Shown here: one piece after another, positions 16,131 through 64,000 of the stretch
Numbering within the stretch: the first letter of the stretch is position 1
How the letters are laid out: each line of letters starts with the position of its first letter
Assembly (NCBI RefSeq): GCF_001194135.2
Contig: NC_068990.1
Coordinates: 88,154,086-88,218,085 of the forward strand
DNA length: 64,000 nucleotides
Source: Octopus bimaculoides
Taxonomy: Eukaryota
Direction: 5' to 3'
Translations under genes and position numbers: made by a program
The notes under the pieces: generated by a model
Databases searched by the model: none
What the model was told of the DNA's origin: nothing
The model's input: only the letters and a program-made list of their open reading frames with translations

Positions 16131-16185
16131 ATGCATCTCTTGTTAGAGTATGCATTAATACTTGGGACGTTATATAATTGTTTAT
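16131..16185 (+). CDS. PAN/CCP gene exon 1: start codon and signal peptide part 1
   Basis: caaaaATG CAT CTC TTG TTA GAG TAT GCA TTA ATA CTT GGG ACG TTA TAT AAT TGT TTA T|gtaagt = [18 protein letters not shown]; phase-1 donor; A at -3. Confidence 0.75.
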
Positions 16186-19100
16186 GTAAGTTTTCATTTT
16201 TTGAAATATTTCCCTTTTTCTTTCCTTTTACTTTTTGTATAATTTCAACCAATAATGTCATATTTTTTAAATATAATTCAATTAATATTGTGCAAGAACT
16301 GTATTTTTTCAGAGTACTGAAATGCAATTAAGCTTTGATTACTTCATGGCTATGAGAAACAGAAGTATCTTCAGATACCAGGGTCTCCTTTACTATATAG
16401 CATTAAGTTTCAAACTCTTAAGATTACAAATCGCTATGCAGTAACAAAACATGCTTGGAATAACACCTGCCATTTCCTCAAATCACACCCTACTCTATTA
16501 AATATAGAAGGGCACATGAGATGATGTGGTCCTTGATATACAAAAAAAATCGGATGGTCACGATGGAAAAGACTCTGATCATAGATATGCTTGTTAAAGA
16601 CTGATCTATGATTAATCTTAGAAAATAACAATACTCAGTTAATAACCAATTTTAAAATATTTTATAATACTTTTAAAGGCCTCAATTTTTGTTTTATAAA
16701 ATTAACAGCTGAAAAGTTTTAAGGTCTATTTATTAAAAAGTTCTCATTATTTTCTGAAATTTCAGTCTGTCCTGAATATTGTCTCGCTAAATCAGGTAAG
16801 AACATGTTATTTGTTGATATTTTTTTTATATCATAATTTGTGAACAATAAGCCTTGTTGATTACAGATTTCAAAAAGCTCAATTACTTTTATATTACATT
16901 TATGATGTTTAGGGTATCAATAGAGTGGCACTGGTATTTCAGTTTCTCACTAATAGTTACATTCTTTATTGATATATATATGAACAAAAAATATACACAT
17001 GTATATGGTGCACAGTTTCCATCCACCAAATTCCACTCTCAAGATACTAGTCAACTGAAGCTCAGTATTGAAAACACTTGTCCAATATGCAGTGCAGTAA
17101 TATTGAAACTAACAATCCTGTGGTTGTTGCGTAAATCTCTTGATTACACAGTCATGGCTTCAAATACTTCATTTGATAATTAAAGGATTTCTGACATGCT
17201 AGCAATGTTTATTTTTTTATACTAAGCTTTTCTATGGAGTATATCCATAGGTTTTGAGCTGTCAATGCTATAGTGAATTAGTTAAATTTACTATATACTT
17301 GAGATAGTTGTAAATATGTGTTACCTTTATTATATAACCTCACTGTGGACAGTAAAAGAAAGATTGACTGGGTTCTGTCATTTGTGGTTTATGATTATCT
17401 CATGTATCTAGTAATTTTAATTAATTTACAAAAGAGACAGTTCAAAACTTACTGATATACTTCACAGTGAAGCTTAGAATGTACCTATTATTCAGGGATT
17501 ATTTCTAGATAGATTTTAGTGAGTGACCAGTTTCATACATTTTTATGTTTTTGTGTTTTAAAGACAGCACTAAAATTTTGTCTTGTAGTTGATTATACAT
17601 CTCCTGAGGAAATCTGTTTGACAGATGACATTTCTCTCTTTTTCTCATTTCTCAGGCTTGATCTATCATATCATATCTAATGTAATCCTTAAGATTACAT
17701 TTGATAATATGACATTCTGTTTTAAAATGTTAGGGGTGTAATTTGAAGGAGGTTTTGTTGCTATTTCTTGCCTGTTGAGTGACAACATAGAGGCCTTTAC
17801 TTTGGCTTGACCACAGAAAATAATGCAAGCTAACGAAGCTGACATAACTTGTTCACTAGTAATATCTGTATGTTGCCTGGTTCAACACCACCTTCAGGTG
17901 GTCATGGTGATACACAATACTTGGTCCAATGTTAATGTATTTATTACAATAACAAACACTCAAATTGAATATGTGGCCTGGTGTTTAAGTTAGAAACCAT
18001 TATCATAAATAATGTGACCACCAATAATAATTATAATTGCTCTTGTTGTTAAGGTCAATGCTTTATGGATTGACCGAATTGTTAAAGTACCGACAAAATG
18101 TTTTGTGGTATTTGTTCTGGCTCTTCACTTTCTAAATTTAAATCTTGCTGAGACCTCCTATACCTTTTCGGGGTCAATAGAATAAATTACACATCGACTC
18201 CAGAGGCCAATTGAATTGACTGACTCTTACCTGAAATTTCGGGTTTTCTACCTATTAAGGGTGACGAATTCACAGAATCATTAGAGCATGAGACAAACTG
18301 TTGTGGTATTTATTCTGGATCTTTTACTTCTATGTTCAAATCCTGCTGATGTCAATTTGGTCTTTCTAGCGCCAATGAAATAATATACCAGCTAAGTGTA
18401 GGGTATAATTTAATCAACCAACTCATACCTAAAATTTTTGGCCTGCTATTTATGTTTGAAATCATTGTTGCTGTTACTTTTCATTATTCTAAATCTTACT
18501 TTTGCCCCAGATTCTTTGGACACTTTTGTGAAAATAAAAAATGCAATTCTGGATGTTACTGAGAAAAAGTTAATGAGTGGCTATATAAAAACTGCAGATG
18601 CCTGTGCAAAAAAGTGTATGTCAGCTGAAATTTGTTTATCATTTGAAGTAGTGAAGGGAAGAGGAAGATGTTACATATCACAGGAAAGTGCAGGAAACAC
18701 CAACAAACTAAAAAAATCCAGAGGAAGAGAGTACCATCAACGATTACTACGTAATTATTCTTTGGATTTTATTATTGAGCTCTCTTTCTTCTTTTGCCAA
18801 AATTTATGATCTTATTGGTACTTCATAGTATATATGAAACAACTTCTGTAAAGTCATTGACAGGTTTACCTATAAGGACAGACATAGACACCTTTCAGCA
18901 AAGAAGCAAGACTAGGAAATGTAAATACTGTTAGGTCATTCTCATACAGCATTTGTTTACCTTGAACACTTTCATGTACTTTTCAATTGTTTTTTGATGT
19001 AAGGAAAGCAACTGTTTTTCACAAACCTGAATTATATAGCAGCAGCAGTAGCAGTAGTAGTAGTAGCAGCAGTAGTAGTGGTAGTAGTAGCAGCAGCAGT

Positions 19101-63336: not shown

Positions 63337-63492
63337 CATCATCATCATCATCATCGTTTAACGTCCGCTTTCCATGCTAGCATGGGTTGGACGATTTGAC
63401 TGAGGACTGGTGAAACCGGATGGCAACACCAGGCTCCAGTCTGATTTGGCAGAGTTTCTACAGCTGGATGCCCTTCCTAACGCCAACCACTC
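63337..63492 (-). repeat. Same (GAT)n-tailed SINE-type repeat, 5'-truncated
   Basis: 63356-63492 is the exact reverse complement of 82-218. Confidence 0.88.
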
Positions 63493-64000
63493 TTATATAT
63501 ATATATATATATATATATATATATAGTAGAATAATAAAGAGAAAGCCATCTCTGCTCATTCTTTCAAATATCTATACACACACACACACACACACACACA
63601 CACACACACATCTCTATGTGTGTATTTAAAACAAAAAAGACTGCAAAATCTGTTAAGTGATGAGTTTGCCATGATTAACCATATTCAGTTACATCCTTTT
63701 ACAATTTTGGTTGAAATACCAAGATGTATTCCTCTTTTCATACTTCTAAAGTTGATAAAACAATCACAATTCAAGTACTGAAGTGGATTTATTTTTATGT
63801 ATTGTCTCAGCAGAATGTGTGGTTATGTGCATATGTTAGGAACCATTATTATTAACTTCAACAATAATTACTCATCTTAAGTTTGATGGATTGACAGATC
63901 ATTCAAGCATCAGATAAAATACGTTGTGGTATTTGTTCTGGCTCTTTAACTTCTGTGTTCAACTTTTGCTAATGCAAACTTTGTCCATCCAGGGCCAATA

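Follow-up and report, generated by a model that had tools for sequence, protein, structure and literature searches.

The window analysed here is a stretch of 64,000 nucleotides of Octopus bimaculoides DNA (assembly GCF_001194135.2, contig NC_068990.1, positions 88,154,086 to 88,218,085, forward strand), in which the last exons of NDUFV1, encoding the 51-kDa subunit of complex I, are followed on the same strand by a long array of exons coding for PAN/apple and Sushi (complement control protein, CCP) domains. An earlier note, made from the letters alone, had assigned this array to a hidden secreted protein. In our judgement the window probably holds the 5' part of one large octopod gene for a secreted multivalent binding protein, which would be the octopus expansion of a coleoid family of secreted proteins carrying a GON domain. 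The coordinates of all features are collected in Table 1.

Exon organization of the PAN/Sushi gene

The exons were located by tblastn with one exon of each of three recurring classes, A and B (both PAN) and C (Sushi), and one of them, B5, was taken from the list of open reading frames (ORFs). On the plus strand the array comprises 24 exons (7 A, 7 B and 10 C) in the order ABC ABC ABCC ABCC ABC ABC ABCC, that is, seven units with one domain per exon. Exon lengths are 237–240 nt for A, 231–234 nt for B and 165–174 nt for C; every length is a multiple of 3, as are all length differences between exons. Each exon is bordered by one strong polypyrimidine-AG acceptor and by a GT donor, with all 48 splice sites intact and all in phase 1. 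When spliced, the 24 exons give 5,016 nt, corresponding to 1,671 amino acids with no internal stop (1,690 with the leader). The exon classes, their order, the AG/GT ends and the stop-free frame described in the earlier note are thus confirmed by tblastn and by splicing.

The region from 4900 to 18500 was scanned for ATG-initiated segments of at most 35 amino acids containing a hydrophobic 9-mer and followed by a strong phase-1 donor. The segment at 16131-16185 was the sole candidate, with none on the reverse-strand control; it is phase-compatible with A1 and unique within the window, so that a candidate is present for the leader exon that the earlier note had placed before the repeats. At the other end, the gene continues past the 3' end of the window; the donor of C7b, the last exon detected, is intact. 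Between 59595 and 64000 only transposon remnants were found, with no further A, B, C or GON exon, and the helicase and reverse-transcriptase fragments that follow C7b may account for the absence of another A exon from the rest of the window. Two assembly gaps fall within the array; both are intronic and have phase-1 exons on either side, so the reading frame is unaffected, and an extra symmetric exon might still be hidden in the larger of the two.

Table 1. Features of the 64,000-nt window (positions counted from its first nucleotide).
Feature	Position	Strand	Remarks
Candidate first coding exon (leader)	16131..16185	+	18 aa + 1 base; donor T/GTAAGT; phase 1
Exon A1 (PAN A)	18511..18750	+	ortholog in Logan contig L004
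Exon B1 (PAN B)	21254..21487	+	
Exon C1 (Sushi/CCP)	22463..22636	+	
Exon A2 (PAN A)	24345..24584	+	AF2 (AlphaFold) model, pLDDT 94
Exon B2 (PAN B)	26275..26508	+	
Exon C2 (Sushi)	28859..29029	+	
Exon A3 (PAN A)	29630..29869	+	
Exon B3 (PAN B)	30912..31145	+	
Exon C3a (Sushi)	31573..31743	+	3' third and downstream intron near-identical to C3b
Exon C3b (Sushi)	31921..32088	+	
Exon A4 (PAN A)	34457..34696	+	
Exon B4 (PAN B)	36206..36439	+	
Exon C4a (Sushi)	39447..39617	+	in duplicated block 39286-40675
Exon C4b (Sushi)	44119..44283	+	in block 43946-44814
Exon A5 (PAN A)	45407..45643	+	
Exon B5 (PAN B)	46594..46827	+	
Exon C5 (Sushi)	48496..48666	+	
Exon A6 (PAN A)	50389..50628	+	
Exon B6 (PAN B)	51848..52081	+	
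Exon C6 (Sushi)	53631..53801	+	
Exon A7 (PAN A)	55293..55532	+	
Exon B7 (PAN B)	56281..56511	+	
Exon C7a (Sushi)	57378..57548	+	
Exon C7b (Sushi)	59424..59594	+	last exon detected; donor intact
Assembly gap	43491..43885		in 4.5-kb C4a-C4b intron, ~60 nt 5' of second copy of duplicated block
Assembly gap, 10 N	46956..46965		B5-C5 intron, 129 nt past B5 donor
PIF1-like helicase fragment (Helitron-type) and weak reverse-transcriptase fragment	60129-60356, 62158-62505	+, +	
NDUFV1 (complex I 51-kDa subunit), last four coding exons	1087-1188, 2604-2657, 3269-3388, 4828-4899	+	same strand as PAN/Sushi gene
Mariner/Mos1-type transposase remnants	2793-3134, 8950-9267, 62928-63287	-, +, +	Transposase_1 and HTH_48 matches
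Short interspersed repeat, five copies	44-240, 12154-12332, 14604-14844, 57121-57282, 63336-63492		
Long (CA)n/(TG)n microsatellite	15963-16100		ends 30 nt 5' of candidate start codon
Long (AGC/CTG)n trinucleotide repeat	19019-19183		A1-B1 intron; reads poly-Ser on one strand, poly-Leu on the other

Domain identity and properties of the predicted product

Searches against Pfam returned PAN families and Sushi, and nothing else, for the window product. In units 1-3, PAN_1 (PF00024) was matched over 6 stretches with E=1.1e-45 and 153.8 bits, and Sushi (PF00084) with E=5.5e-8. Taken singly, A and B exons score above the PAN_1 cut-off of 21.4 bits (43.2 and 35.4 bits, respectively), while Sushi reaches 33.5 bits in the multi-unit protein against a cut-off of 20.7 and is borderline, at 20.3 bits, in the single exon C6. 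Profile searches of the PDB matched the C module to CCP modules of CR1 (8e-7) and to DAF (2.4e-5), and the B module to the apple domain of Toxoplasma gondii MIC4 (E=5e-4). The AlphaFold model of A2, with a predicted local distance difference test (pLDDT) score of 94, was matched by Foldseek with probability 1.0 to the HGF N domain, plasminogen PAp and the leech antiplatelet protein (LAPP), at a template modelling (TM) score of 0.71-0.78 (0.71-0.76 for the HGF N domain and plasminogen PAp), the match being the PAN fold itself, a helix on a curved antiparallel sheet. All 24 domains carry four cysteines, 96 out of 96 domain cysteines being kept; the invariant columns are present in all 14 A and B exons, and in all ten C exons the pattern C..C..C..KW..C is invariant, with the tryptophan before the fourth cysteine. 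The 14 PAN/apple and 10 CCP domains called in the earlier note are therefore borne out by Pfam, by the cysteine patterns and by the PDB profile matches.

In characterised proteins, PAN domains have proteins or glycans as their ligands, and arrays of CCP modules act as extended binding or spacer elements. The 4-Cys PAN fold is common to the HGF N domain, plasminogen PAp, factor XI/prekallikrein, MIC4 and the leech antiplatelet protein, all of which bind proteins or glycans; identity in the structural alignments is 11-27%. In none of these proteins do PAN pairs and CCPs alternate, and the number of PAN domains is never above 6. The predicted product is rich in lysine (12.6%), with an isoelectric point of about 8.9, and an N-x-T sequon is common to six of the seven B domains. 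Judging from this composition, a basic, lysine-rich chain would suit acidic glycans, as in the heparin-binding HGF N domain.

A parallel for the gene structure is offered by CR1, in which CCP modules are encoded on phase 1-1 exons and long homologous repeats have arisen by unequal crossing-over of multi-exon cassettes. The octopus gene shares with it the phase 1-1 CCP exons, the repetition of multi-exon cassettes and the CCP profile match already mentioned (E=8e-7). By contrast, CR1 has no PAN domains and is membrane-anchored, and there is no sequence orthology beyond the CCP fold.

Relatives in octopus and in other molluscs

Close protein relatives were found in Octopus species only. Units 1-3 match seven Octopus proteins at 44-48% identity (E=0), whose names are either "uncharacterized" or "SVEP1-like". 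An exhaustive phmmer search with one of these relatives added models of 1,730 amino acids in O. bimaculoides, 2,643 in O. sinensis and 4,470 in O. vulgaris, and beyond the Octopus models came a steep fall in score, to generic proteins with CCP or GON. When the alignment of the seven units was used as a profile against a word-indexed database, two genomic Logan fragments were the only matches. In the known models, the highest-scoring full-length match of each window exon is 38-71% identical; when short partial alignments are included the per-exon best matches span 38-87%, the highest values coming from the partial ones. No database model therefore corresponds to the window gene itself, the per-exon identity being too low.

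The same A-B-C or A-B-C-C cassette, with one domain per exon, recurs in LOC128248837, LOC106869402 and LOC106869390 of O. bimaculoides, in LOC118764742 of O. sinensis and in CAI9728790.1 of O. vulgaris (4,470 amino acids, "SVEP1-like"). These models have in common with the window gene the motifs FVKVK..C..C..CLSFE..CYLS..RDYYQR and C..C..C.SYEY..C.LSN.T, and membership in one family is established. Precomputed Pfam annotation of the Octopus relatives lists PAN families and Sushi, with GON in one and a faint MBD in one. The uniqueness of the PAN-PAN-CCP architecture that was implied in the earlier note does not hold, since the cassette is present in predicted models of three Octopus genomes; its statement that no named protein has this architecture does hold for characterised proteins, no member having been found in the searchable literature. 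The literature on PAN, Sushi and GON domains in cephalopods and on the LOC identifiers likewise gave no relevant account of any member. Two identities suggested by database names were rejected. SVEP1 was dismissed because VWA, EGF and pentraxin domains are absent from the relatives and the window product has only PAN and Sushi, and an ADAMTS9/GON-1 metalloprotease because neither the window product nor its homolog P0002 has a reprolysin catalytic domain or TSP1 repeats.

Four O. bimaculoides loci on CM046610.1 (L002, L008, L003 and L001) were examined, with about 165 kb sampled within 88.25-88.83 Mb. In the sampled loci the A-B-C(-C) exons run unbroken across annotated gene borders, and only the last locus terminates, with A-B, four GON-domain exons and then a CACHD1-like gene. 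The annotated "genes" in these loci are fragments of much longer arrays. LOC106869402 provides the 3' end, with GON, and the window provides the candidate 5' end; by extension, the window's gene would also end in GON. In the four O. bimaculoides loci and in an O. sinensis locus (L009, CM016867.1, 21.26-21.33 Mb), models were seen to begin or end in the middle of a domain, and the intervening A, B and C exons are unannotated. The O. sinensis locus lies in the middle of an array, with neither an array start nor NDUFV1 in it.

Outside Octopus, modules of the family occur in much shorter proteins. In Sepia (Acanthosepion) pharaonis, CAE1175485.1 (359 amino acids) consists of a type-B PAN, two CCPs and GON, and the Sepia protein "GON-Sep-2" (UniRef R4FJA6, 291 amino acids) of CCP and GON. 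Their type-B PAN and CCP modules are 35-46% identical to those of octopus and their GON is 47% identical to that of LOC106869402; they differ in having one cassette or less, with no type-A PAN seen and no array, whereas GON is absent from the window. In Haliotis asinina (XP_067682698.1) and H. rubra (XP_046575758.1), proteins of about 300 amino acids named "ADAMTS9-like" combine a signal peptide with PAN and GON and align to the last B domain and GON of octopus at about 29-33% identity, but they have no Sushi and no repeats, and they are not metalloproteases despite their name. Argonauta hians GAB1601772.1 (four PAN domains) and GAB1605714.1 ("zonadhesin-like") begin with a clear signal peptide, directly followed by a pair of PAN domains in A-B order that shows the same motifs; they lack CCP, one is fused to sequence of VWD/TIL/VWA type, and the identity is 32-35%. 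The octopus genes look as if an older secreted PAN/CCP-GON protein of molluscs had undergone cassette expansion in this one lineage. Also supported is the description in the earlier note of a lineage-restricted, cysteine-rich PAN/CCP protein encoded by one multi-exon gene that runs off the window.

Evolution of the array

Between units, the exons are 66-70% identical in nucleotides, the same level as in the first 60 bases of the introns (58-70%), and codon positions 1 and 2 have diverged as much as position 3. The Nei-Gojobori omega, the ratio of nonsynonymous (dN) to synonymous (dS) divergence, has medians of 0.78 for A, 0.83 for B and 0.66 for C, with many pairs at or above 1. In the pairs C3a/C3b and C4a/C4b the identity jumps abruptly from about 70% to 94-100% within or just past the exon; the blocks at 43946-44814 and 39286-40675 are 82-97% identical, while the exons C4b and C4a within them are 72% identical. 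These switches are gene-conversion or recent-duplication tracts.

An ortholog of A1 from another octopus was found in a Logan whole-genome shotgun contig (L004); one orthologous exon is present in the Logan runs SRR11869385-94. Its exon is 80.6% identical, compared with 86-93% for the intron flanks, and the pair gives dN 0.22 and dS 0.25 against an intron distance of 0.13, with the changes clustered around Cys1-Cys3. Positive selection as the sole reason why introns are better conserved than exons was toned down as an explanation, since gene conversion is at least as good a fit to the C3 and C4 switches and to the elevated dS where A1 has diverged. In a set of about 220 distinct, near-full-length copies of the family's domains, the cysteines and core motifs have the lowest entropy, whereas the loop preceding Cys1, the hairpin that follows CLSFE and the C-terminal third of A have the highest. 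As read from these alignments, the A1 and unit data would fit rapid diversification of a binding face on a rigid scaffold, by selection and/or conversion, and they are no proof of positive selection.

For 60-80 nt to either side of every A, B and C exon, the intron flanks show about the same conservation among units as the exons do; examples are ttttactttaa(t/c)tctag preceding A and gtaattattctttgtatttta following it. These flanks could be splicing signals for a long run of same-phase exons, or conversion tracts.

Genomic setting

The sequence of the window is AT-rich, its GC content being about 35%, and it contains four N gaps, numerous (CA)n tracts and the remains of transposons. Upstream, the PAN/Sushi gene is bounded by NDUFV1, whose 3' exons stop near 4.9 kb; one of the Mariner/Mos1-type remnants lies inside an intron of NDUFV1. 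A homology search with the NDUFV1 fragment, aimed at the orthologous 5' end in O. bimaculoides, gave nothing but short fragments from outside octopuses. As the long microsatellite lies 30 nt before the candidate ATG, the promoter or 5' untranslated region either includes the microsatellite or sits in an upstream non-coding exon. The short interspersed repeat present in five copies is common to the O. bimaculoides loci L001 and L002, at 82-91% identity, and, more generally, the elements resembling short interspersed nuclear elements and the transposons of the window are 83-94% identical to those of the O. bimaculoides loci.

Alternative explanations

Several points weigh against the interpretation of the window as the 5' part of one gene for a secreted, rapidly diversifying protein. 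The leader is plausible as a signal peptide but a poor textbook example of one, as far as its sequence allows a judgement: it is 18 amino acids long, its best 9-mer has a Kyte-Doolittle value of 2.28, a glutamate at position 6 falls in the hydrophobic core and there is no clear -3/-1 site. Because of this weakness, the label "secreted" is based chiefly on the kinds of domain present, on the cysteines and on the sequons for glycosylation. Among the relatives, a comparable N-terminus is found only in the distant Argonauta proteins, and the Octopus models are partial computational predictions without a signal peptide. Neither a GON exon nor a stop was found in the window, beyond which the 3' end lies. 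Short database hits examined as possible spliced transcripts all proved to be unspliced genomic ORFs (Logan). The structure model of B3, built from a 7-row alignment, has a pLDDT of 47. Finally, a dN/dS near 0.8 is also expected from relaxed constraint.

This last point leads to the possibility that the array is decaying and not expressed. Such a pseudogene would account for the between-unit dN/dS of 0.66-0.83 and for the equal divergence of the codon positions, and it would agree with the lack of a matching annotated protein in the database. Yet all 24 exons are free of stops, an outcome with a probability of about 1e-27 if substitutions were random at the observed divergence from the class consensus, the indels are in-frame only, and the 96 cysteines, the invariant tryptophan and the 48 splice sites are all kept, which makes decay the least probable of the alternatives, close to negligible. 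Nor do the units read well as seven separate small tandem genes, each encoding PAN-PAN-Sushi(-Sushi) from its own start. Read in frame, the polypyrimidine tracts before the A exons are free of stops and hydrophobic in appearance, hydrophobic in-frame ORFs run through the tract before most of them, A2 has an in-frame upstream ATG, the O. sinensis model P0007 contains such an upstream stretch internally, and database models split the arrays into many genes. However, an open, hydrophobic reading is expected from T/C-rich acceptor tracts, an in-frame upstream ATG is missing from six of the seven A exons, C2 and A3 are only 600 nt apart, no second leader-like exon is present, and the borders of the O. 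bimaculoides models cut through domains and units. A single gene is favoured for the seven units because matched strong phase-1 sites are found at all unit boundaries, with strong acceptors at all A exons and strong donors at the last C exons, and no conserved stop follows the last C; separate genes are accordingly rated as highly improbable. The number and order of the units might also be in part an artefact of assembly, with repeats collapsed or duplicated around gaps, especially at C4a/C4b. The 395-N gap does adjoin the duplicated block, which is up to 97% identical in part, and the orthologous O. bimaculoides arrays are rich in N runs. Against this, the 72% identity of C4a and C4b points to paralogous exons and not to haplotype copies, ABCC units without gaps occur in the window (units 3 and 7) as well as in the O. 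bimaculoides arrays, and the units differ by about 30-35% in nucleotides, so that collapse is unlikely; we consider an artefact of this kind improbable.

Proposed mechanism and function

According to the model proposed here, a leader exon would be followed by a tandemly duplicated cassette with one domain per exon, PAN(A)-PAN(B)-Sushi, to which some units add another Sushi. The protein made from it would be a secreted, lysine-rich, N-glycosylated and disulfide-rich chain of at least 14 PAN and 10 CCP modules, continuing past the window. The PAN pairs may serve as ligand-binding modules, for proteins or glycans, and the CCP modules as spacers or additional sites of binding; a chain of many units, each slightly different, would then bind broadly and with high avidity in a secretion outside the cell, for example a gland product, mucus or matrix. 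Unequal crossing-over and gene conversion would make the array grow and diversify, and selection would preserve nothing beyond its cysteine scaffold, reading frame and splice sites. By analogy with characterised PAN and CCP proteins, our best estimate of the function is multivalent binding of high avidity by a secreted protein, either in the secretion of a gland or in a surface matrix.

A more specific proposal is that the protein belongs to the secretion of the posterior salivary (venom) gland and is not a general mucus, matrix or immune protein. The name of the cuttlefish relative "GON-Sep-2", which has 47% identity in GON and a matching CCP, is the sole pointer to a tissue and is taken as a hint. 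The "GON-Sep" names reportedly come from a 2013 study by Ruder and colleagues of the coleoid posterior venom gland transcriptome. Fast evolution and gene-conversion mosaics would also fit secreted proteins engaged in an arms race. On the other hand, the venom papers that were searched do not mention PAN or GON for octopus in their main text, peptides of Sushi proteins in the skin-mucus proteome of O. vulgaris do not match the window's gene family, and giant proteins are atypical as venom components. A venom role is therefore held to be unlikely, though with some real chance of being right. Somewhat more doubtful still is the suggestion that such an array forms a single transcription unit over hundreds of kb, as on O. 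bimaculoides CM046610.1 (~88.25-88.82 Mb), with about 100 cassettes and a terminal GON, encoding at least 20,000 amino acids; gene conversion, together with near-neutral or positive selection, would maintain the diversity of its units, and the product would be a hyper-multivalent binder in venom, mucus or immunity.

Significance

The results point to a problem of annotation, in that the family has been cut, in three Octopus genomes, into arbitrary pieces called "uncharacterized" or "SVEP1-like" although the cassettes are continuous. The gene in the window was resolved from its sequence alone, with no matching protein in the databases searched. Moreover, the window provides a candidate gene start beside NDUFV1, which is missing from the database models and which eases 5' rapid amplification of cDNA ends, promoter and tissue studies. 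If the giant single gene were true, its product, a secreted protein, would rank with the largest that animals are known to make. Should the array be a single gene, it encodes an exceptionally large, fast-diversifying secreted PAN/CCP protein, which would be a candidate for a role in saliva or venom, in mucus, in the egg coat or in the recognition of non-self by an animal that has no antibodies.

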